Source: Botryllus schlosseri
Taxonomy: Eukaryota
Assembly (NCBI GenBank): GCA_051294905.1
Contig: CM119376.1
Span: 25,234,001 to 25,298,000 of the forward strand
Length of the DNA: 64,000 bases
Direction of reading: 5' to 3'
This document shows, piece after piece, positions 681-36,157 of the stretch. The first letter of the stretch is position 1. Every line of letters starts with the position of its first letter. The notes beneath the pieces are model-generated. The model did not search any database. It worked only from the letters and a program-made list of their open reading frames with translations, and was not told the origin of the DNA. The position numbers were made by a program, and so were the translations under genes.

Positions 681-1296
681 CTCAAGTCACATCGCATCAA
701 ATAGGCCTTTTGCACGACTTCGATCACGTGACTAGATACGCATAGCAACCACATATTGGTTAGCAAGCTACATTCTCGCGCACCTGCTTCAGTGCTAAAT
801 ATCGCATAGTGTACTGTTGATTTCTGGTTGTAAACGTTTCGGAAATTTGTTGTAGAAGTCATCAGAGATTCACCTATGCTAGATGTCAATCCTCGAATAT
901 GGTGAATACAGAGCACAGCTGCGCCCTCTAGGGAGCAGTCGTTCAATGTTTGCATCACCGATTTGCCTCAGTGACCCGTGATTGCGCAATCGTCGTCGCT
1001 GCTCAGAGCTCAGAGCAAGACCTGCTATACAGGATTCAGAGAATAAGCTGCAGAACTACAGATGCACCTGCACACTGCAGATCCTTCTTTGAGGCGGCTG
1101 TATAGGCTTTGAAGTCAAAACAGACAGGGAACGATGCGTTTCCAACAGACTTATTCTGAAAAAAAATCACTAAAATGCATGCAGATTAGAGGGTGCATTT
1201 CTGACGACTTGAGATCTTTCTGCATAATGACAGTGAAAGCTTAGTGACATTTTCGTGCTATGAGTCAGGCATCAGAGGCTTAGATTCGTCATTAAT

Positions 1297-1431
1297 TGTA
1301 GTAGCGTGACTGACGGTCTGTCTAATATACGAGACGTGAGTCCTCAAGCAGCCATGTATTCAGTGACGACCAAGCACCGAAGCACCTGCGATGTCGTCAC
1401 ACCCTAGTGGCGCCATAGAGCTACCACTACA
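1297..1431 (-). repeat. 3' LTR (135 bp)
   Basis: Identical to 2923-3057. Abuts the polypurine tract at 1432-1446 (minus strand TCCCGAGAAGGGAGA). Confidence 0.97.
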
Positions 1432-1615
1432 TCTCCCTTCTCGGGACAAGCACAAATGCTTATAAGCAGCACAAACATATACAACGCAAGCACAGAATGA
1501 AGACAATAAACAATCCGAATTGAGGCAGTTAGCGGTACAAAGGTATGAAGCAATTGGCAGGCAAGAGGTGAATGAAGAACACAACATATTTACACACACT
1601 ACTCCTATAACAACA

Positions 1616-2869
1616 TCAGTACTCCTCGATGTATCTGCGAGGTGCGGTTCTGTTCCGATCCGACCGTCGGACTATCGCCGCCTCATGATGGTCCTCACGA
1701 TTGACACTAGTAGCGCTCGAACTGCTATCTCCTCCCTGATCGGGAAATTTGAAGAATTCAGCTGCCTCACTGGTGGTAATGTCGACGCCTTCTTGCGGGG
1801 CATTCTCCGTCTGGTATCTCCGCACCATTCGGCGATTTCTTCTGAAGGTGCCACGCCCAGTTCTGATAACCAAGGATCTGGGTTGAGTGTCAAGTTTTTC
1901 CACAACACCTTGCGATTTGCAGTCCGGAATCCAGACGCGATCTCCCACCTTGAACTCATCTCCAGGTACTACTCTGTGTCTTTTGTTGTAATCACGAGTA
2001 ACTCTGCGTCGGTAATCTGCTTCAGCTTTCTTCACGGCGGTTCGGTCGACAGACTTGGGCAGAAGATCGTCTGGATGACACGGTACTCTTGTTCTTAGTT
2101 TGCGGCCCATGCTCAATTCTGCCGGCGAGTAGCCGATAGCCAATGGCGTGTTGCGGTATGTGAGTAGCGCCAGATATTCATCGTCACATTTTCGCAGAAG
2201 GTTTTTGATGGTCTGAACGGCACGCTCAGCCTCCGAGTTCCCCTGTGGATATCTAGGTGAGGACATGATATGTTCAATTTTCCAGCTTTCGCAAAATGAC
2301 GCAAAGTCGCGGGAAGAGAACATAGGTGCTCCATCGGTGACCAAAGTCTCGCAGATGCCATGCCTACTGAAAATCTTCTTGAATTTCAGAATCGTCTCTG
2401 CTGCGTTCACTGTTTTGGAGACTACGCAAATCTCAATGTCCCTGGAGTAGTAGTCAACGGCTAGCAGGTACATGGAATTCTGGTATTGAAAGAAGTCGGC
2501 ACCAACACGTTTCAAGAATAGCCAAAACTTCCTTCGCATTCTGAAGCGATCATCACGAAGCTCAAAGCACGCATCAAATTTGTCAATGACTAGTTTGTAG
2601 TCATTTTTATCCTCAGCAGGAATGTCTTGATCATTTTCTCGTCGAGCAGGAAGCCACGTGAGATTCTTATAAATTGACTTTCCCTCCGGACCAATAAGAC
2701 TCAGGAGGTGTCCTACCTTGACGCAGTCATCCTTTTGTGATAATTCTGCAGCACAGAGATACGTTTCAAAGTCTTCCTTCCAATCAACCCACGCTTGAGG
2801 CGGGTTGTTTCCAGCCAGTGATAATGGCTTCGGGTGCAGTCCTTGCAAGGCAGTATATCCACTAGCCAT
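1616..2869 (-). CDS. 417-aa Gag(N-terminal)-integrase fusion protein of the LTR element (K02A2.6-like/Mag type)
   Basis: aa 1-116 resemble Mag Gag (PKPLSL..AWVDWKEDFETYL..GHLLSLIGPEG..IY). From about aa 119 an integrase core: GADFF (D125), YLLAVDYYSR, LVTDGAPMFSS (D179), SSPRYPQGNSEAERAVQTIK (E215, D35E spacing), ALLTYRNTP, SPAELSMGRKLRT, and C-terminal FKVGDRVW. No PR, RT, RNaseH or HHCC motif. Confidence 0.93.
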   Translation of the reverse strand: MASGYTALQGLHPKPLSLAGNNPPQAWVDWKEDFETYLCAAELSQKDDCVKVGHLLSLIGPEGKSIYKNLTWLPARRENDQDIPAEDKNDYKLVIDKFDACFELRDDRFRMRRKFWLFLKRVGADFFQYQNSMYLLAVDYYSRDIEICVVSKTVNAAETILKFKKIFSRHGICETLVTDGAPMFSSRDFASFCESWKIEHIMSSPRYPQGNSEAERAVQTIKNLLRKCDDEYLALLTYRNTPLAIGYSPAELSMGRKLRTRVPCHPDDLLPKSVDRTAVKKAEADYRRRVTRDYNKRHRVVPGDEFKVGDRVWIPDCKSQGVVEKLDTQPRSLVIRTGRGTFRRNRRMVRRYQTENAPQEGVDITTSEAAEFFKFPDQGGDSSSSATSVNREDHHEAAIVRRSDRNRTAPRRYIEEY

Positions 2870-2911
2870 AATTCTGAGTAGCTAAGTAATTGCTATCAGC
2901 TGCATTTACAA

Positions 2912-2922
2912 CGCTGCCACCA
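2912..2922 (-). other. Primer-binding site, probably for tRNA-Leu
   Basis: Minus-strand TGGTGGCAGCG directly after the LTR is complementary to a tRNA 3' end ...CGCTGCCACCA. The Leu assignment is from recall of tRNA-Leu 3' ends. Confidence 0.75.
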
Positions 2923-3057
2923 TGTAGTAGCGTGACTGACGGTCTGTCTAATATACGAGACGTGAGTCCTCAAGCAGCCATGTATTCAGTGACGACCAAG
3001 CACCGAAGCACCTGCGATGTCGTCACACCCTAGTGGCGCCATAGAGCTACCACTACA
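2923..3057 (-). repeat. 5' LTR (135 bp)
   Basis: Identical to 1297-1431. Followed on the minus strand by the PBS. Confidence 0.97.
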
Positions 3058-3479
3058 TTAATGCCCTGCGGTATGCAGACTTTTGAAACCGCAGAATTAT
3101 TTTTTTTTCGGCATCACGGCAGTTGAGCATCGCCTGTATCAGTAGGCCAGACTCCAGAGTGGTATTGGTGACAAAGTCACGCACAACTTTCAGTTTGATT
3201 ACTTAACAACCACTATTTCTAGTCTGGTCAGTGGTATGCTACGATTCCTGAAAATTATTTTCCTAATATTATGTTATTTTGTTTTCTCCTTATGCAACAA
3301 CACCCATTTGTTGTCAGCACAGCAAAAAATGGGGATAACTGCACTAGCGATAGTGATAGATAAAGAGTGTGTGTGCGTAATGCAACCATGCTTTTTCAGT
3401 TACACCTGTATAACTATGATCATGTATAATTCATTTCCAGTTGATTTTACCTAAATAATTGAATACCTTAATCTTCAAT

Positions 3480-6400
3480 ATGTCGAAATCTGAGCAATCT
3501 TCGGCAGTCAAAACTACTAGGCCGACCTATAAACGTATGGGTCAACAGTTTGTGTCGGGTGGAGCCGCAGGTTTGTCGATTCTATAATACGGTAACTTGA
3601 ATTCGCGTACATATTTTATGCATATATATATTTGTTTTCAGGACTGGTGGAGATATGTTTGATGCATCCTCTCGATGTTGTCAAAACCAGGTATGGTCCC
3701 GCATTTCATTTCAATAGTGATACATTGAATTTTCTTCATCTATTCTCATGCTCCACTCGTGCTACTCAATCAACTCAACCATAATTTCCTGTTTGTGCTG
3801 TGTCTAATTTTATTTTCCAATAATGATAGCTTAGTGCCGCTATAATGATGGTAAAATGTAATATGCCTTAAATTGGTGAAGAAATACCCAATGTGAGATT
3901 GAAGCTCTGTTTCTGTGATGCTTTTTTATCATGAATGAGTATGTCATGATTTTATCTTCAGATTACATGTTCATTTGAGAACTTTGCAGCTCATTATTAA
4001 GATCACTATTGCTAGTTTGCTACTATTGGTAACCAATCATTATACATCATGATGGTATGAATACAATTATTAGTGTAAATTAGAATATTCAGAAGAGCAG
4101 TATAAAACTATATTTCCGACAGAATATGCATAATACTGGTGAATGATATTCTTGAAAGGAAAAAGATTTTATGTAATAATTTGTATATTATAATTCATCT
4201 TTATTGTTTCTGTAATTGAATGCATTCTCTCTCTCTACTATAAAGCATTGTACATTATATCAAACCATACTCTAGTCATTGAGATGAATCAGATCTTGCA
4301 TTATATATCTTGAACTCAATACTGTTGTCATTCGGCCGATTGCTTTGAGATCAGTCGAACTGACCTCGTGCTCCGGATGTTTTTCAATGACTTTTATTGG
4401 CTTATTTGTTTGCCAATGACAATCATAACTGGACAAATATTTACTCAGCATGAATTTACACATTTTCAACTTCAATGTTTGTATGCCCTCTGCAGTCTGC
4501 ATCAGTTGCAGTGTTGATGTTGTATTGAGCAAATGCTTTGCTAATTATTTAGGCTTCAATTCAAACTTCAGTATTGGTTACTCCATGTTTTATTGGTGGT
4601 TCGCCAGTATGTACCTAATGGTGCGTTTTGCATATTCTGTATGAAAATGAGACAAATTAACATTTGCTCAAGAGGATTTTTGTGAGGAATTACTTGAAAT
4701 CACAATGTGATACCAGCACAGGCCTTCTTATACCAATATTATCGATAGCAACAGCTGGCCAGTGAATGCTACCCAATCTTAGCCCTAAAGTTCCTACAAC
4801 TTTCATGACCATGACTGGTTCTTTTGATATAAATTTTGTTTATTTACTCAGTTGGGCTAGTGCCACAATTAATAAACCATGCGATTTATGGCATGATAAC
4901 AAAAAATTATTATGCTACGCTAGTAAATTCCGAATTTGTCACAGGTTTCAACTTCAAGGTGGAGCAAATGATCCAACCAGATATACTTCTGTGGCTCATT
5001 GCTTTCGTACCATGTATCGAACTGAAGGGTGAGACGTATTAAATTAAATCTCCGTGCAATTTTGTGATTATGTACGCTACTCAAGATACATTGAAGCTGT
5101 CTTAATTCAACCCTTTTGACGCAGGTTCCTATCATTTTATAAAGGAATTCTGCCTCCGATACTTGCTGAAACACCAAAACGCGCAGTAAAGGTCAGCATA
5201 TTCTCATTTCCTATTCAGCACTTTACATTCTCTAATCGATATGGTGTAACTCAGGAATGAGGTATTCCATTGAAACGTGTTAGATCTCGCCAACCCGTTG
5301 CTGTTATGCACAAGTCGTGGCTTTGTTGGTGCACAATGCCGCAAATGAGGGGACCATTAATCTGTTTTCAGTGAATTTGTATGTAGCAGTGGTTTTCAGG
5401 GTCAAAAGTACTTGTATTGAACCAATATACTTGAATAAAGATCATTTTGGAAACCTCTGAATCAAAATGCTTGATTTCATTCAAAAAACTTTAATAAACT
5501 TAAATCTGATGTAGCCTATATTATTGTCTCCACGTAGGTGTGCAACTGTGCATTGATCAGTATCCGTTGGAAAAAATAACATTCGCATCACTAGCACAGA
5601 ACATTGTGGCTGTCAAATGGTTATCGTTGGTGTTAGTTGTCAGAAGCTATTAACAATTAATTCAGACACTCAAACGTATCGTCACTCCTGTTGAATCTAT
5701 TTTAGTTGAGATATGTATCCACTTATTTGCAACTTCCAATTAGAGAGGTTTTCTTCTTCATCGAAATCAATAGTTGTACTTGAGTGGATTATCTACAACA
5801 CTTCCTCTGCACCTATTAGAGTACAGTTCTGCCGGGGACATGGTTCTACTTATTATTGACTGTGCTTTGATCAGCTCTGCTATGTTTCACATATACAATT
5901 GAGCGGAATGAAGAATTTGCATCAAATTTATGTATGTTTACCCCATTTTATGTTTCAGTTCTTCTTCTTTGAAAGATATCGGGAGCTGCTGAGTTTCGGA
6001 CAGCCATCGACGCCGTTGGTACGTTCTGGGTTTTCGCCATTTAACCCTATTGCATTCGCCGTTTCGTAACCTTGATATTTGTTTGGATACATATTTGATT
6101 TTTTTGTCAATAGGGAGTTTTACAACAGACATGTGACTTGAGCATGTGGTGGATCAAATCTCGCTCGTTATCATTGAACATGGCACTACTGGTGAATATC
6201 ACTATTATAGAACAATGTCATGCCGTTTGTCCTGTAACATTGTAGTGCGAGAGCCTGGAAATAATTGTGAAACCCGGCCTAGTACTAAAAGACGTATATC
6301 TAGCTGGATTCCATAGTGAGACGATTCCTAGTGATGCCATTCACTCTGTCTGTATGTAACCAATTGAAGACACCTCATGATTACAAAGGAGTCGAAACGA

Positions 6401-9400
6401 GTAGAAAGGAGTCAAACAGCTATCTTGGCCTTCAGATAACTATAAGATATTGCATACGCACTGAATGAAGTAACAGAAGAAAACATAAAGTGGACGCGCC
6501 ATACAAATCAAGTCATTCAAGTGCATTGAAACCAGTATGCCGGATCGTAGTGCAGTAATCTGTAGCGTAGGCTAGTATTTTTACACTGTTTTGTTTTGGA
6601 AATACGGATTAGGCCACTTTGAACTTTCATGCTCCGCGTCTGAATCACTACTAGCTACTTGTTTGCATTGTTCGCTATTCTGTACTGCGTTTATGCTTTT
6701 TCGTGACTTGTATGTATGTAATAAAGTTCATTTTTCTATTTGCTCAAGTTGGATTTTTTCGAACCCTAATCGTCCTTAGGTGGCGCAAGAGCACCACGCA
6801 ACAATCGAGTCACGATGGTGCGAATCAAATTTAGGATGTCGCTTATCCTAGTAGCGATAGCATGCTATCCGGTGTTTATAATCGGCAACGTGGTCACGAG
6901 TGGTGTGAACGCATGATGCAGCGCACAATGAGATGTTGGAATGCAAATCATTTTCGCCAAATACGATGGCAATTCGTGGTAAAACAGCCATTGTCGGGTG
7001 GCAAGCAACATAATTTGCGCGTACGCGGCCATTCAGTTCACGGCTATGGTTCGCATGACCAACGCATACGCGCCGACCCTACTAATCTGCAAGACAACAT
7101 AACTGCTGATTCTATCTCAAATATTATATCATCAACCGGTATCACGCTGTTGCGTTTCGGCCGAACTATACGAAGACACACTCGAAGGCGGCGAAGCCTC
7201 GCATTTCAAATTGGTAGTTAGCCACTGTAGATATAGACACTTGTAAGGGAACTAATACTGAACCGCCAGTATCACAACTATTTGCTGCGTTTCGCGGCGG
7301 CGTGGATACCGCTTCACTGAATTGCCAGGCCGCGTCTCATCGACCGTCTTTCGTCGCTTTCCAGGTCTACGCGGCAGCCGGTATGGGGTGCGGCCTGACA
7401 GAGGGCTTCGTCATCAATCCATTCGAACGGGTGAAAGTTCAGCTGCAGTCGGAAAGAAACGTCAAATTGGCGGAGGTATGGTCACGTGACCTTTTACCAA
7501 TGAATTTGGCATTAGAAATGTAGTAACAATAATTATTATGAAAGCAACGTAATAATACTGTATTGATGAATTGGAAATGAATGTTTCACTTAATGTGAGC
7601 GTGGGTTCTGATACACGACACTTGGCGAATTATTATAAATGTACCGACTATAATTATTAAGCGATGCGTTACTACTGTATTAATACATACGGAAATGAAT
7701 GTTTCACTGAATATAAGCTAGAATTGTGATGTGATAACTAACTATTATTAAAGCGGTGCAATAATACTGTATTGATTAATTCGAGAATCAATATTCTAAT
7801 TTCCATTTCTGAAAATGCTACAAGAGAACTGTATAGTAGAGCTCTTCAAAAATGACTTTTTTTCACAAATCGTACTGGCTACTTGATAAAATTGTTAGGT
7901 TACCTCATTTAAGCATACACACAAAATTTGGTTCAATTCCAGCCAGTAACCGCTTTGCTACAGGAGAAGAAAGTTTCTATTTATTATATAAAAATGAATA
8001 ATAACAAATTTGAAAATTTTCTGTTCACCCCATGAAAATGTTAGGCTGTCTATAGAAACGATCCTCACCAAATTTGTATCAATTCCAACCAGTGGAAGCG
8101 GAGTTATTACCGTTGAAAAATTTTGATTTGAATAAAATAGTATTTACGGTGAGCACAACTATAATAAATAAACAAAGAATCGGTCACCGTAAATACTATT
8201 TTATTCAAATCCAAATTTTTTAGACGCTCCGCTTTCATTGGTTGGAATTGAACCAAATTTGGTGAGCATCGTTTCTATAGACAGCCTAACACTTTCATGG
8301 GGTAAACAGAAAATTTTCAAATTTTTTATTATTTATTTTCATATAAAAAATAGAAACTTTCTTCTCCTGTAGCAAAGCGGTTACTGGCTGGAATCGAACC
8401 AAATGTTGTGTGTAGGCTTAAATTAGGTAATCTAACAATTTTATCAAGTAGCCAGTACGATTTGAGAAAAAAAGTCATTTTTGAAGAGCCCTACTGTATA
8501 GTGCGAAACGAGTCAAGCTTTGTGTGCAGACATTTGCTATTCCCATGCTTATGTGAATGAACTCTGTTTTGCTATGAACTGAACTTGAATTTTGTCGTGT
8601 GTCTTTCTAGTGCGGAATTAAATACGTTTTCCCAAGTTTTGGCGACTTCAGTAAGTCTAATTCTAATCTAAGAAAATTTACATTTGTCCAAACTGCCGCT
8701 AAGGGCCGATTTCAATATGGGGAATTCACTGGTAACATCGACGCGCCCTATGAGCCTGTTACGCAATTTGTGCGGCGTGCGAATATTTCCGATTTACGTC
8801 CCGTTTCCGAATCGGAAGCATAGTGAGATGTATCGCGGATCGTGCCGCCGTACTGAGAATAGCCTGTATCAATTTACCGGGAGCGTAACAAGCCCCCTTC
8901 CCCGCTTGGCTTAGCGTGAATAGACCTCGTCTCTAGTCGTTCGGATATTGCGAAAAGACGCCCCTCAGTAAAATATTGATGCGGTTTTACAAAGGTGCGC
9001 CTCTTTTGACGGTTTTGACTTTCATATTTCGGCTTTGTTATGTGTGCGATGACCTAAAAATATCGCGCGAGAAATTGCGTTGCGCAAATTGCCAGATGTG
9101 GTCAAATTAGTCAACGTTGGTGGTAGAGTAGAATTGGAAGTAAAGTTGCAAATTTCTACTCGAGTATAAGTAGAAGCAGCGATATCCGAATGACTAAAAA
9201 GTCTGGATTTTTGGGCCCTAGTTTTGCTTAAGTAACTGAAAACAATCGAGTAGAAGTGGAGGTAGTGGAGTAAGTGTTGCGAGTAGACAAAAATACTTGA
9301 GGACTGCGTTAAAGTAGAAATAGCTATTTCCGAGTAAGTACGCATAATAAAGTACGTCTCTGAAGCTTAGTTTTGACTATAAGACTGAAAATTGTCGAGT

Positions 9401-12400
9401 AGAAGTGTAAGTAATCTAAAAGGCAGAAGTGGCGATTTCCGTGTAAGTGAAAAGTGAGTATTTTCGGCCTAGTTTTGCATAAAAAAAAAAGTGAAAACTG
9501 TCAAGCAAAAGTGAAAGTAGTCCAGAATCATAACCAACTGAGTAAGCAGCTTGACTAGATGACATCTACTGAGTACTTCAAAAAAGTAGAAGTAGCATTT
9601 TCGAGGAATTAAAAAAGGTACGTGGTTTAGGGCTATAGTTTTGCCTAAAAAGGTGAAATCTGTCAAGTAGAAGTGGAAGAAGTCTAAAATCATAACCAAT
9701 TGAGCAAGTAGTGCGAGTAAACGAAACATACTTGAGTACTCCAGATAAGTAGAAGTACTCCGTTAATAACCATATCTTTGAATTGCTAACCGACGTAAGT
9801 TCGCTCTGTCGAATGTTGAAATCATACTTCCGAAAACTTCTGTTTCAGCAAGAGTCCACTTTTTCGAAAGCGAGAAAAATCATCAAAAGCGAGGGCCTGG
9901 GCATGAAGGGCATCAACCGCGGTCTGACGGCCACGCTGGGGCGGCACGGAGTTTGGAACATGGTTTATTTCGGGTTCTACCACTCCATTAAGAAGTACAT
10001 CCCGCAAACAGAGGTGAGTCAAATTGATTCGGCTAATGTGTTTATTTGTTTTGCGTCGAGGTTTTGCTATCCTATTCGTTTTAATCGAATCAAGGTGTTA
10101 CCACGCATAAACGGTGGTCGCCTGATTTCCTGCTCAGCATGGCAACGGCGTGTCGCGCATTAATAACACTTTGTTATTTGAACAGCTTCTTTGAGGTACA
10201 GAACTTCAATATACAATTGAATAGTATATTCATATTAAAATGAACCCGAATATTTTCGGCTGACACTCGTCAGGGGTAATCGTCAGCAACTAGTAGAGAA
10301 TTCGAAAGAACAGCGTATATCAACAATCGTAACACAAAATATGACGTCACCAGCACGAAATGTCGAATACGAGTCAGCTACCAGTGATGTAATTTGATGT
10401 TATCCGGTGTGCGTGCCGTGAACTCGAAGTTCGTAATCGCGCTTTGTAAGATGCGCGGCTTCCGACCCCGTCGTTGAGGTGTGGCTTGAGGTTATGATAA
10501 AATACTGTAACTGCGCAAAATACGGATGGTTCGTAGATATTTGCATTGTTAAAACTGATGGTAGGTGTTGAACCGCGTGACGCTATCATGTAGGCTACGT
10601 GTGTTCACTTCCCGACGGGATCCGTATCGAAATACTTGTACTTATTTGGAGCAATCAAGTAGGAATTGCACAGCGTCTTATGACGCCACAACGGGTCCTA
10701 CGCGTACGCTGTTATCTTCTGAACGCATTCTAGATAACACTATGGTTAACCCGAGACAGATACCTTGGCATTGAGCCCGCACGCTGGAATTCCAATCGCA
10801 AACATTGTAACAGGCGTATTGGTATATTGTGAGTGACAGAGCTGATGATGGATACTATTGGTTTTCCTTGGAAATGTCACCCAGCTTACGTCTTGCCCGC
10901 TGCTGTAAGCTTTGATTTACTTCCCTTGTTCCGTGTTTGGTTCTGTGGCACTCTAGCATGTCGTTGCGGTTCGCGAACAGATGTTGTTTTCATATTTTCC
11001 TTCGCAAGCTTTCGGAAACACTTGTATCGCCGGGGCGAAAGTCTTTTAGCGACGTGTGTAGATACCGCCACGCTGCGCGGACTTTGAATGGTGCCCGCTC
11101 TCGTGGGAAGTCGTTTTGCCAATCACAGATTTCATTTCCTTCTTAGTGCGAGTATTCTGCGTCGCCCAGACCCTTTTGTAGCGCCCATGATAGTAGTATT
11201 CGTATGCCTGCGGTTGCCCTACATTTGAGCATGCGACACTTGAACTTTATTATATTATGACTTTGACTTGAATATTTGACTTTATAACCTCAAAACTAAC
11301 CCTAACCCAGAAATCATCACGTACCCAAACTCTAACTCAAACCATACATGAAATCTAATCCTGACCCAACCCTAACTTAAACCCAACTGCTCAAGTGTCG
11401 CACATGCTATTCGTATGCCCGTATGTCTCGTCTATTTTCTACGGACCATGCGTACATTTGTATCGGTAATCGCACCGGTGTTGCGGCTATACACCCGATG
11501 TATCTACCTTGGTAATTTGTCCAATACAACTTAGTTAGTTTCGTGCAAATGTCCAAGGCACTTACAAGTGTCCGTGCTCGATATTGTTGAGGCCCAACTA
11601 TTGTTGCAGCTGAAATTCTAAAACGTACGGATGTGCAATTGTGCATGTTGTATATAGCATAATTCTTCCTATCATGTTGCGGAGTTGTTGCTTTTAGCTG
11701 CCTTCGCCGTTGAATCACGCTAAGCTATTATTCCGACTTGCAAAGCGAAGGCCATTTCAGAAGACTTGTCAAATCTGCGATATTTCGATTCTGCCCAGCA
11801 GTAATGTTTGCGAAATCCTGTCATTAGCTCCCAACTACACCATATATAAGACTGCACAAGTCGGGCTTGGGCTACCGTGTAACATTCACAACACTGCCTC
11901 GTCGCCATGTGGCATTAACAAGGGCTGGGTATGAGTACTGAAATTATACACTCCGTCATACTAAGAGTTAAAATTTATCAGCGAGAATCACAGTTTCGAT
12001 ACTAATTTTCAGTGTGGCAGATTTGAAACCTCAATCGGTCGTATCGCTTCGTACGTAACGCGTATAGTACAAATCTACGCACTTTCATGGAAATAACGTG
12101 TCTGCGAATTCATGATCGACGCGCGGCATTGTCACTAAGTGCAATGAAATAGGCATATTCGTGAAATACCAAATTATCTTTTATGTGATGTAGAACCGGC
12201 ATGATATTCTTTGCGGTGGCATAAAAGTTACGTATTTGAACTTAATACTTCTTTCATACTTTTATGGCGTTATAATTAGTGATGCTCGACTGGGCCCGAA
12301 GCCCAGCCCATGCAGCCCTATATAGTATTAACGAGTATACCTTAATACGCTGGACGTCGCATTGCTTCATGAAGTGAGTCGACTTCGTGCCACAGACCTC

Positions 12401-19700: not shown

Positions 19701-22700
19701 ACAACTCAAGAAACTTAGTAACCTTCATTAGAGGAACGGCGTAGGCCTTGCACGCTATCCTCGCGCCATTTTGTTCATTTGACATGTCTTAAATTGTAGA
19801 AGTAGGAAGGCCCACTCATATTGCAGTATGGATTCTATCCCACGAAGAAGTGGGAAAGCGCGTTGGAGGTGGAATGAAAAATAAATTTTAACGGGGAAAT
19901 CCTGTTCGACGTAGATGCATGCATGCAAAAGCGTAACGACTAGATCTCTGAATGGAAATGCGTAACCGTATCCAGTGAAGTTAAGTTCTGACAAATTGAA
20001 CCATGAACGGATTAGGTTAAATGAACGCCAAAGTATATCCACGTCCAGCTGTCAGCGCCGACGGTTTCTTACCGATATTCCGCGCTTCGTAACTTTGAAA
20101 ACGTATAGACCCACCGATTTTCTATGGTCAATTGGTTAAGCAGTGTAAAAATTGTCACGGTTGTACCCTTCACTGGACCGAGGTTGTACTACGAACAGGA
20201 GCCTCGTGTTTTGTCCGTTCGGCAAATTCTTCGTTATGCGCATTCAACGTTGCACGGTGAACCACGACTTGTCGGTGCGAACGCTAACATTATACGGATT
20301 TCCGAATGCAACTAACACGTGCATGACGATTTACGCTCATTCACGGTAAACGCATGGTGATGTATGATGACTTGACAGGGCCCGGTTTCTCATGCTCACA
20401 CGTGAACAATATACTGATCAACGGAACATATATCTTTACCTGAAATGTGCGGCTGATCGAACCTCGGGAAACCAAGGATCTCGTTGACCGAGTGGCAATA
20501 CATCGGGTACGGAACCGCTGGGTGCCTGAATGAAGCAGGTCCCGGTACGGACGGAGGCAGTGGATGTGGCTTTGAACCTGGCTGCAGCATGTAGGGAGTA
20601 TACATCGCGGACGCAGCATTGCTGTACACGCCTTGATGATGGACTCCTGGCGGAGGCGACACGTCTTTTATCATATTTTCTTGGCATGATGCCGGATAAT
20701 TTGGGTTCAGTGGATTGTTCGGATGCAGCACATTTCCGATCTTGTTCCGCAGGATTCTGCTGATGGAACTGACGGACGGCACGTTGTACTTGTCGCATAT
20801 GCAATCCGATAACAGCCTGTCTCTAATCTCCCAAGCGAAAATCCCGGGATCGCGGACTTTATAATCCTTGATTGCGTTCACCACCGACGGGGTGGTGACG
20901 CGTGGCTTGCTACCCCCAATGGCGCCCGGTAAGATGGAGCCTGTCTCGTTGTAACGGGCGAGGATTTTGCTGACACAGCCGTGCGAGACGCGAAGTTGTC
21001 GGCTGATGTCGCAAGGTCTGATGCCGAGTTGAGCGAGTTCCACGATACGCAACCGAATGGCGTTTGGAAGCGGGCGTCCGTTCACGAAAACCCCGCCGAG
21101 TTGATTCACTTCACCGAAGGTTTGCTCTGTTCTGCAAACTGTTGTTGCCGAAGAGAAGTCCATGAAAAAGAATGGATATATGTTAATTTAGAAGTAATGA
21201 AATGGATTGTGCATTCAGTATTATTGTTGCCATAACATGAAGTTAAAATAAAGGGCTGGTAATCGTATATTTTGTATCTTTCTACGTGGGTGACTACACA
21301 CGCGACCGCGGTGTGGTGTCAATATACGCGATGAGTAATGTACATATAAGTAAGCCCCCAGTTATACACCCACCAGTGCCTCTTTATCCAGAAAATATCC
21401 GTAAAATGGCGGGCTTCACGTAATAAATATTGTTTCTGATTGTGGTAGCAATTAAGGCGGAATTGAAGCATAATTTGATGTCGTACATCCGAATATTGAC
21501 GGCAAATATACACTATAGCTTGTACTCGTCTAAAGAGCACCGAATTCCCAACTACAAATATAAGATAGCAGGTACCAACACCTCTCCATATCTAATAGAT
21601 AATGTACGAACAACTTATGCGGATTAACCTTGATGCTGGACATGTAATCTTGCTAAGGATGACATAGCTCTTGACGTCATAACACGCGATATATGATCAG
21701 CCGCTGCAGAGCTCCCGAACGCATCAAAATCAGTCAAATGATGACCGGCCGTAGGCGGTATTCCCACACACGAAAGCATATTCATACAAATATATTACTA
21801 TAAGTTTTACTGGTACAGTATACTGCCAGAATTATCCACATTGGATTATCCTCAATTTCGAAATAGTATCTTCGCCATCTGACTTGCAGCCTCTACCTAG
21901 TTCGCATAGTTTGGCCTGAAACCTTTGAATCCGAACCTCGCCATTATTGACAAGCGGTGAACCAGAGTCAATCAAGATGTTTGTTTGTTCGTTATATTTT
22001 TGTGGACACTACGGCTTATTGTTACCCACTTTTTCAATTTTGTCTCACAGTCGTTTCAATCGTCTCTCAATTGATCGCTTTCCTATACGATTGCCCTATT
22101 TGATATAGACAATGCGGAAAATAGGTGAGATTTCTGAAAGCCATATCGCCACTATTCTTTGGAGTTATCAGATCATAGATTAGTTACTAATATTGTTTTA
22201 TTAAACTGTATAGGTTACATTTTATAGATGTATATTTTTGATCTGCCTGTTCAGAATTTCGGTACGCACCTAACGTACAATCGATATCGCGGCCCTTTCA
22301 AACGGTAACTGCGGTTAGCTGCATTGGTCTTGGAATTTTCTTTGCATCCGTACAATCCAAATTCAAACCAATGAGGAAGCGATCCATCTGCGATTGCTTG
22401 AACGCAAATTCATTGCTGCCAGTTATACTTCTATTGATGTTGCAAAATTGGAATTTTACATAGGTGGTTGATTCGAATTGATCGGGTGCTATTGGTAGTT
22501 TGCATTCACAAAAACAGCGCAATAAGAATAAATTAAATTTCGCAGAGTAAACCCTTTAAATACCCTTAAATATCCGTCGCTTGTATCATTGTAAGTTGTT
22601 GCTAATTGTGCATGTTCGGGGATTACACCCCAAGTGATTGTGTACGCCTTCCCTGCTGGCAGCAGTTATATCAGTAGAAAGCGGTATACGAGTAATGCTA

Positions 22701-28181: not shown

Positions 28182-29027
28182 CAGTGGTTCTCAACCTTTT
28201 TGTCTTCACGGACCCCCGAAGTTTTAGTTCAAATTTATTTCAATCATCGTACAATCGTCATCTGTTTTGTGCAAATAATATCTCTAGGCTATAGTGATAA
28301 ATAGCAACAAACAGAATTTTCTTTAAAATAACATCATATACTATTTACGTAGAAATTGGGCTAATTTCAAAGTGAATTTTGCAACTGCATTTTATGAAAT
28401 ACGTAGTCGGGTCTTGAAAATCCGCGCCTTCGATTTGATATGAACGACTGTAGCCGAAAATCCTCTTCCACAAAGATAGGTGGTTGCGAACGTAATAATA
28501 ACGCGTAACCCTTCCGACGACGCATTTGGGCATGATCGCAACAAAAATGGCATCAAGACTGACAAACAAATTTTAATGGATTGGAAATATAACGGCAAGC
28601 CTTGTCATTTCTATCAAGCAGCTCATCTTGAAGTTATCATGGAAAAATGGTTATATCGCGAGAGAGAATGTTTTTTTGTAAACATTACGAAGTCACCGTG
28701 ATTGACCTTGCTAATCCAACTTTTTATTTTTTGCACAATCCCCCGAAAATATCTCTAAACAGCAAAATATATGTATCAGTAGGTAATGGTAATTTAGCAA
28801 TTAAAATGAGTATAGACAGTAGGATATTTCATCTCAGAGGGCCATTCTGTTGATGTGAGTTCTAGTCTAACTAGTAATCAAGCGAAACTGTCTCGCGATT
28901 TTCCTAATTTAAAAAATGCAAATTCGGTTACCAACGATTTTGAAAATTTAGAGGCTTCGCGGACCCCCTGAAAATGCTTTGCGGACCCCCTGAAAATGCT
29001 TTGCGGACCCCCGGTTGAGAACCGCTG
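28182..29027. mobile_element. hAT-type MITE, 846 bp
   Basis: TIRs CAGTGGTTCTCAACC / GGTTGAGAACCGCTG. 8-bp TSD CTCTATAC/GTCTATAC (7/8). Subterminal tandem GCGGACCCCCTGAAAATGCTTT repeats at about 28959-29012. Confidence 0.88.
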
Positions 29028-35788: not shown

Positions 35789-36157
35789 CAGTGGTTCCCA
35801 ACCTTTTTCGCCCCATCGCCCCCTTTTCAAGGTGAACACCGATCATCGCCCCCCAAATTTTGTGTACCGAAAATTGGGCATACAAACTGTAATTACCGGC
35901 GGGTTGACTAAAAAAAAAAGGTCAAATTTCCGGCACGATGTCTAATTTGACACACTTTTTGAGCTAAATTTCCGTGTGTTGACTAAGAAAAAAAGGTCAG
36001 CCGTTTTGGCGCGTCATCGCCCCCCTATCGCCCCCTTCGCTATTTTCGCCCCCCGTCGCCCCCTTTGTCCATTTTTGCCCCCCTGTCGTCATTTTCGCCC
36101 CCCTAGACAGCCAAATCGCCCCCTGGGGGGCGATATCGCCCACGTTGGGAACCACTG
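35789..36157. mobile_element. hAT-type MITE, 369 bp, with CGCCCCC subterminal array
   Basis: TIRs CAGTGGTTCCCAAC / GTTGGGAACCACTG. Perfect 8-bp TSD TTCTAGAC (35781-35788, 36158-36165). Confidence 0.93.

Follow-up and report, generated by a model that had tools for sequence, protein, structure and literature searches.

In the mouse endogenous retrovirus IAP, a 1.9-kb internal deletion generates an in-frame gag-pol fusion in the I-delta-1 subtype, which is non-autonomous and yet the most active subtype, and the fusion acts in cis (PMC6466679). In sugar beet, families of short long terminal repeat (LTR) elements with target-site duplications (TSDs) carry GAG and/or integrase (INT), reverse transcriptase (RT) and RNase H (RH) fragments and need autonomous partners; the size range of 1.5-4 kb was described there as nameless (PMC13570524). 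TR-GAG elements have a complete Gag open reading frame (ORF) and no pol (PMC4350172). Here we analysed a 64-kb stretch of Botryllus schlosseri DNA (GenBank assembly GCA_051294905.1, contig CM119376.1, positions 25,234,001 to 25,298,000 of the forward strand; hereafter the window), which contains an LTR retroelement of 1.76 kb on the minus strand at window positions 1297-3057. Its only long ORF joins a truncated Gag to a truncated integrase. Our preferred reading, to which we give a probability of about three in four, is that a single-ORF LTR retrotransposon of Ty3/gypsy type, Mag-like in character, gave rise to this element by internal deletion and that the copy is non-autonomous.

The element is read on the minus strand, hence its 5' LTR is the repeat at 2923-3057. 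This repeat and the one at 1297-1431 are direct repeats of 135 bp with 100% identity and TGT..ACA ends, and a 40-mer derived from them occurred exactly twice in the window against an expectation of 0. Both are enclosed by TTAAT, a 5-bp TSD found at 1292-1296 and 3058-3062. On the coding strand the primer-binding site (PBS), TGGTGGCAGCG, lies directly 3' of the 5' LTR (2922-2912), and we take it to correspond to the 3' end of tRNA-Leu. The polypurine tract (PPT), GAGAAGGGAGA, is at 1442-1432, immediately before the 3' LTR. The ORF at 1616-2869 encodes 417 amino acids (aa) without interruption, occupies 1254 of the 1491 bases of the internal region and was the longest in the window, where the next one had 255 aa. 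The 64 kb contained no N, and no stretch of the element occurred in them a second time. With direct LTRs ending in TG..CA, a TSD, and a PBS and a PPT in place, the locus has the structure of an LTR retrotransposon. Its features are listed below, where L001 is a closely related metagenome contig with the integrase protein P0001, and P0124 is the nearest full-length relative found.

1292..1296, no strand: left TSD, TTAAT, read from the sequence and identical to 3058-3062
1297..1431, minus: 3' LTR, 135 bp, TGT..ACA on either strand, 100% identical to 2923-3057 and 133/135 identical to the LTR of L001
1432..1442, minus: PPT GAGAAGGGAGA, abutting the 3' LTR, read from the sequence and also present in L001
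1443..1615, minus: 3' untranslated region (UTR); together with the PPT, 1/184 positions differ from L001
1616..2869, minus: truncated Gag plus truncated integrase in one in-frame 417-aa ORF (evidence: ORF, Pfam, AlphaFold model, fold matches)
1619..2509, minus: integrase part, residues 121-417 (rve match, triad columns, 97% protein identity to P0001)
2497-2495, 2335-2333 and 2227-2225, minus: catalytic codons of D125, D179 and E215, respectively (invariant alignment columns)
2509..2510, minus: deletion junction K120/R121 (start of DNA homology to L001, starts of the database matches, coordinates of P0124)
2510..2869, minus: Gag N-terminal fragment, residues 1-120, the first 5/9 predicted capsid helices (41% identity to P0124 10-109, alignment, AlphaFold model)
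2870..2911, minus: 5' untranslated leader, from PBS to start codon, read from the sequence
2912..2922, minus: PBS TGGTGGCAGCG, directly after the 5' LTR
2923..3057, minus: 5' LTR, 135 bp, defined by its identity to the 3' LTR
3058..3062, no strand: right TSD, TTAAT, read from the sequence

In the 5' leader an upstream ATG opens a mini-ORF of 7 codons (window 2895-2872, minus strand), which stops just before the main start codon.

The deletion was located mainly by comparison with L001, a low-coverage contig of 1481 bp from the ENA metagenome assembly ERZ650156, which was the sole close relative in any collection searched. Its DNA was 98.5% identical to the window from position 2509 through the remainder of the ORF, the 3' UTR, the PPT (L001 1237-1247) and the whole 3' LTR, and P0001 shared 97% protein identity with the integrase part of the window ORF. 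The flank that follows the LTR in L001 was unrelated to the flank in the window, indicating that the two are separate insertions. Upstream of the equivalent of window 2509, L001 diverged fully: it encodes the C-terminal part of the zinc finger and a linker (..CEKC...FPERPWS) and then RVGADFF, whereas the window protein reads ..RRKFWLFLK at the same point before RVGADFF. The homology to L001 thus starts at window 2510/2509, which places the junction at K120/R121, four residues before D125, and since the end of the zinc finger is still present in L001 upstream of it, the window copy is a deletion derivative. Protein searches gave the same boundary. Among 1.84 billion representatives 23,587 matches were obtained, and the best of them, as listed among the top 150, nearly all started at query residues 119-122, so that the homology boundary at the integrase start was very sharp. 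In the alignment of Gag N-termini the nearest relatives read FW.HLKRE.. at the joint; the Arg codon could therefore derive from either side. AlphaFold confidence was low exactly at the joint (residues 109-116).

The amount of sequence lost can be judged from P0124, a protein of 1370 aa with Gag, protease (PR), RT, RH and integrase (IN) in a single ORF. Two CCHC knuckles and a DTG protease were read from its sequence, and Pfam placed RVT_1 at 549-706, RNase H at 770-902, Integrase_H2C2 at 1016-1070 and rve from 1083. P0124 10-109 aligned with residues 13-116 of the window ORF at 41% identity (Gag N-terminus), and P0124 1087-1320 aligned with residues 120-351 at 52% identity (integrase). The N-terminal 120 residues of the window ORF match the extreme Gag N-terminus of full-length relatives. 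By this yardstick, the window copy differs from the full-length Mag-like Ty3/gypsy elements in having lost about 975 aa (about 2.9 kb), from the Gag C-terminus through PR, RT and RH to the integrase zinc domain. L001, with an LTR identical at 133/135 positions and an undeleted integrase side, was taken as a proxy for the parent; the gag of the parent was not found among the collections searched.

On the integrase side, the only Pfam match in the 417-aa ORF was rve at residues 132-208. D125, D179 and E215 did not vary in alignments of 19 and 39 relatives, and 35 residues separate the last two. In the AlphaFold model, which was built on alignment A4, an RNase H-like catalytic core was predicted at 121-300 (predicted local distance difference test, pLDDT, about 90), followed by an SH3-like C-terminal domain with beta strands at 311-345 (pLDDT 83-91) and a disordered tail at 360-401. 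The model matched the PFV intasome integrase and the Ty3 integrase (7q5b_B) with E-values of about 1e-12 to 1e-13, and the fold alignments to two-domain and full-length integrases extended over about 240-270 columns. What is missing is the N-terminal HHCC zinc domain: neither Integrase_H2C2 nor zf-H2C2 was found in the window ORF by Pfam, and in P0124 the former covers 1016-1070. Two of the alignments were of limited use for the Gag half: alignment A1 placed Gag fragments over the integrase region and was not used for Gag, and alignment A2 scattered Gag residues across Pol and was used for integrase columns only.

On the Gag side, a model of P0124 1-300 (mean pLDDT 84) placed nine helices in residues 20-211 and the zinc knuckles after them. 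Its top structural matches were all capsids (SIV, HIV, MLV, RSV, copia and PNMA2), with weak E-values of 0.03-0.2 and probabilities up to 0.97. The breakpoint of the window element falls at the end of predicted capsid helix 5, and 5 of the 9 helices are kept. The fusion thus lacks four predicted capsid helices, the entire nucleocapsid and both CCHC knuckles. Retroviral integrases require the zinc domain for multimerisation and concerted integration; integrase cores without it are inactive alone and can be complemented in mixed multimers.

The first-pass annotation of this locus, made from the sequence without database searches, had reported most of this anatomy, and much of it stood. The identical 135-bp LTRs, the 5-bp TSD, the PBS and the PPT are all present in the sequence, as are the uninterrupted 417-aa ORF at 1616-2869 (minus strand) and the D125, D179, E215 triad (D35E). 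The integrase C-terminal domain proposed there corresponds to the SH3-like strands of the AlphaFold model, and the absence of PR, RT and RNase H agrees with rve being the only Pfam match. Its idea of a multi-kb deletion landing in frame just before the first catalytic Asp, with the terminal cis signals kept, also held: about 2.9 kb is gone and the joint lies four residues upstream of that Asp. Other points needed correction. The joint had been put at RKFW/LFLK with about 116 aa of Gag; the fusion is real, but the joint is K120/R121, about 4 residues downstream, and the Gag part has about 120 aa. The integrase is not complete: its N-terminal HHCC zinc domain is deleted, according to both Pfam and the comparison with L001. 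Since the zinc domain is absent, it is doubtful that the element supplies its own integrase, as had been suggested, and capsid tethering of this integrase is unlikely because no more than 5 of the 9 predicted capsid helices remain and both CCHC knuckles are gone.

The insertion is recent, as had been claimed from the identity of the LTRs; 'very young' is, however, a loose term, since 0 differences over 135 bp allow an LTR divergence of up to about 2.2% at 95%.

Both halves of the window ORF were closest to the same relatives (P0124, P0033 and P0005), and sequence similarity thus argues for a Gag half and an integrase half from one lineage. The order of pol in P0124 is RT-RH-IN; PR, RT and RH are absent from the window copy, and its best match among sequences of solved structures was the Ty3 Gag-Pol polyprotein (7q5b). 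The likeness to Mag-like single-ORF elements of Ty3/gypsy, including 'K02A2.6-like' proteins and P0124, consists in the 41% (Gag) and 52% (integrase) identity given above, in short LTRs with TGT..ACA ends, in the 5-bp TSD and in the PBS. The 11-mer TGGTGGCAGCG was also found 3' of the LTR in two distant relatives, one from Cordylochernes scorpioides (L012) and one from a freshwater metagenome (L015, where it is part of an 18-nt PBS). The LTRs of the Mag C training set average 174 bp (PMC3601003). The LTR ends of the window element fit the Mag C motifs TGTNATRT..AYANAACA only in part, whereas the LTR ends of the relatives that share its PBS fit them. Membership in the Mag clade is plausible for this copy, which has no RT of its own, from the single ORF of its relatives, the short LTRs, the 5-bp TSD and the shared PBS.

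In our preferred reading of the window element as an internally deleted Mag-like copy, a single deletion of about 2.9 kb brought Gag residue 120 next to the residue four positions upstream of D125. The deletion could have arisen by a template switch of RT in the cycle that produced this insertion or by a chromosomal deletion after insertion. An in-frame outcome has a prior of 1/3, and as both flanks in the parent belong to one ORF, an in-frame joint yields an open ORF of 417 aa automatically. Since the LTRs, the PBS and the PPT are kept, RNA of the element could in principle be packaged, reverse-transcribed and integrated by the proteins of a full-length relative; without such a helper it would have no mobility of its own. 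The fusion protein, if it is made, would have an intact-looking core and C-terminal domain, would probably not work as an integrase by itself, and might at most join mixed multimers with helper integrase. Different internal-deletion derivatives do occur among the relatives.

Compared with the described systems, the window element is most similar to mouse IAP I-delta-1, in which an internal gag/pol deletion also leaves one ORF and preserves the LTRs and the cis signals; the in-frame deletion from gag to pol, by which that subtype is defined, is present here too. The differences are considerable. IAP I-delta-1 is an endogenous retrovirus with 1.9 kb deleted, whereas the window element is of Ty3/gypsy type, has lost about 2.9 kb and retains a zinc-less integrase as its sole remnant of pol. 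IAP I-delta-1 needs Gag and Pol in trans, and the window element presumably depends on a helper in a similar way. Furthermore, IAP I-delta-1 is a high-copy and highly active subtype, while the window element is known as sequence from one copy. The sugar beet families are plant elements with mostly decayed domains, whereas here an animal element has an open fusion ORF, again in one known copy. TRIM and LARD elements are alike in having LTRs, a PBS, a PPT and TSDs, but they have no coding capacity, in contrast to the 417-aa ORF of the window element. From TR-GAG the window element differs by a Gag cut after helix 5 of 9, by the lack of CCHC knuckles and by the presence of rve. It thus fits none of TRIM, LARD and TR-GAG. 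The first-pass annotation had stated that non-autonomous LTR classes are non-coding or Gag-only; this is incomplete in view of the IAP I-delta-1 fusions (PMC6466679) and the INT/RT/RH remnants of beet (PMC13570524). Coding in-frame deletion derivatives are already known, and a new semi-autonomous class, which would call for several copies with a common junction, is not supported by the analyses made here.

Among the alternatives, the one that fared best is that the Gag-IN form is an amplifying semi-autonomous family, which transposes by borrowing RT, PR and Gag in trans and whose fusion protein helps its own propagation in cis. We consider this unlikely. It would agree with the intact cis signals and ORF, the identical LTRs, the invariant triad, the confidently modelled fold of core and C-terminal domain and the precedent of IAP I-delta-1 (PMC6466679). 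However, we could not detect a second copy of the junction. The exact 417-aa protein was absent from a collection of 15 billion proteins, in which no protein of similar length had close identity over both halves, and word-indexed protein searches with the Gag part (residues 1-119) and with a 140-aa query spanning the junction gave no matches. At the DNA level, a junction 26-mer was absent from metagenome and viral contigs, a Gag-side 27-mer from prokaryotic genome and viral contigs, a 25-mer across LTR and PBS from viral contigs and an LTR-internal 30-mer from prokaryotic genome contigs, and a related-locus search of metagenome contigs returned distant relatives only. Neither the window nor these collections, outside of which the source genome lies, thus held another copy of the junction. 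In L001, the sole close copy, the integrase side carries no deletion, and the HHCC domain, part of the capsid (4 of 9 helices) and the nucleocapsid are missing from the fusion. Selection on the integrase part gave no help to either side: the window and L001 differed there by 3 synonymous and 6 non-synonymous changes, a dN/dS ratio of 0.59 (p = 0.44) in a comparison with no power.

Similar architectures in distant relatives could also speak for such a family. One was found in a freshwater metagenome contig (L015, protein P0205; ENA ERZ936926), where positions 154-2603 form an element of 2.45 kb with LTRs of the 136-bp class that are 95-97% identical, the 18-nt PBS TGGTGGCAGCGGTGGGAT and a PPT, and without a matching TSD. 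Its single ORF of 695 aa encodes Gag, CCHC, PR and the start of RT, to which the linker, core and C-terminal domain of the integrase are fused, without the remainder of RT, RH and HHCC. In Takifugu flavidus (L014, CM011089.1, positions 4001-5290; protein P0107, 304 aa), a Gag N-terminus of about 140 aa is in frame with the integrase core and C-terminal domain at ..LSD/RPWQRVGADLF, near residue 165, and the integrase-side break is four residues from that of the window; this copy is interrupted by one premature stop, LTRs were not detected around it, and fragments of another retroelement adjoin it. In Cordylochernes scorpioides (L012, CP092864.1, positions 5722-9407; protein P0129), about 117 aa of Gag are joined to a point inside the zinc finger at a rearranged locus. 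The fusions in these three relatives are contiguous in the DNA. A fourth one, P0180 (UniRef, from the psyllid Cacopsylla melanoneura), has Gag joined to ..WERVGIDI and no contig on record. Every relative's fusion formed a singleton cluster, and two of them are decayed, the Takifugu copy by its stop and the freshwater element by its LTR divergence and the lack of a matching TSD, which again argues against an amplifying family.

As side observations on the Cordylochernes locus, its parts are arranged in the order LTR with PBS TGGTGGCAGCGG, Gag-IN fusion, inverted LTR plus Gag start, second integrase copy and LTR, and immediately downstream there is a Helitron-like gene with a 69-bp tandem array. 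Many seeming 'Gag...IN' proteins in the annotated pseudoscorpion assembly were multi-exon or multi-element gene models and were not counted as deletion derivatives.

Three points weigh against our preferred reading. Firstly, the distance from the integrase-side break to the first Asp is 4 residues in the window, about 6 in P0180, 8 in P0107 and about 21 in P0205, which puts each break in the short linker that connects zinc finger and core. Three or four independent fusions thus break within the same stretch of about 20 aa, for which chance offers no obvious explanation; the pattern comes from a small sample, with a linker defined after seeing the data and with retrieval through integrase similarity. 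We regard the clustering as unexplained and draw no conclusion on selection from it. Breaks at different places were seen in further derivatives, before RH in P0033 and before the zinc domain in P0005. The latter (L016:1022-3169, a TARA metagenome scaffold) was called through in-frame TGA/TAG and is a decayed derivative under the standard code, which is a caution on metagenome gene calls over eukaryotic DNA. Secondly, further copies with the same junction may exist, as the source genome is outside the searched collections. Thirdly, the ORF has neither stop nor frameshift and its triad and folds look intact, which may reflect youth and may equally reflect selection. Taken more broadly, animal Mag-like Ty3/gypsy elements could recurrently give rise to Gag(-PR)-IN core derivatives without RT, RH and HHCC, exemplified by the window element, the Takifugu locus, the freshwater element and the psyllid protein, that are favoured because the zinc-less fusion or a cis sequence in the core region promotes mobilisation by a helper, as a semi-autonomous class like IAP I-delta-1 that parasitises another parasite. 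We consider this wider proposal unlikely as well.

Another way to obtain recurrent breaks would be splicing of a subgenomic RNA, by which a Gag exon was joined to an integrase-core exon before the RNA was copied back into DNA. The clustering of integrase-side breaks in several lineages agrees with it, and P0180, known by a UniRef accession and no contig, may be transcriptome-derived, judging from the style of the accession. However, L001, which stands in for the parent, reads ..GGTCC and not AG immediately ahead of the junction, and the alignment cannot be slid as the adjacent base differs. With no AG at the acceptor position in L001, canonical splicing does not account for the joint. Moreover, each lineage has its own breakpoints on the Gag side and on the integrase side. 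The explanation by splicing as a whole is very improbable in our view.

A collapsed or mis-joined full-length element in the assembly is likewise very improbable. Repeats are prone to collapse, and one candidate, the distant relative L002 (JAAUYF010165777.1, positions 26-1492), may show such an error itself: it was rejected as a Gag-IN fusion because its order is integrase C-terminus, LTR (about 180 bp) and Gag N-terminus, which could mean that two elements in tandem have one LTR in common or that the assembly wrapped around through it. In the window, however, the joint is a clean in-frame one between non-homologous Gag and integrase sequences with no N and no repeat at it, whereas assemblers collapse at repeats and not at unrelated sequence, and the LTRs and TSD are perfect. 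Finally, domestication of Gag and integrase as a host gene is hardly credible, as the long intact ORF with its conserved triad is still flanked by identical LTRs, TSD, PBS and PPT, has 98.5% identity to another transposon copy and has no orthologues of close identity and the same architecture that we could find.

Elsewhere in the window, an ORF of 255 aa at 20396-21163 (minus strand) contains a paired-box (PAX) domain in full length (Pfam PF00292, E = 2e-65). Its sequence resembles the Pax1/9 type, and the ORF probably represents a single large exon from the gene of a developmental transcription factor; it marks the window as animal DNA. Two tandem repeats were found at 28954-29012 (a 22-bp unit, 2.7 copies) and 36017-36088 (a C-rich 29-bp unit, 2.5 copies). 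No tRNA genes and no Rfam families were found in the 64 kb.

The window element, read as an internally deleted Mag-like copy, illustrates neatly how one deletion in the interior of an autonomous retrotransposon would leave it defective and yet open to mobilisation. In the repeat annotation of the genome, its 417-aa ORF should not be listed among the host genes, and its LTR, PBS and PPT provide a handle for tracing the full-length parent. If the junction turned out to be multi-copy, the element would be an invertebrate counterpart of mouse IAP I-delta-1 and a natural test of how a zinc-less integrase works in trans.

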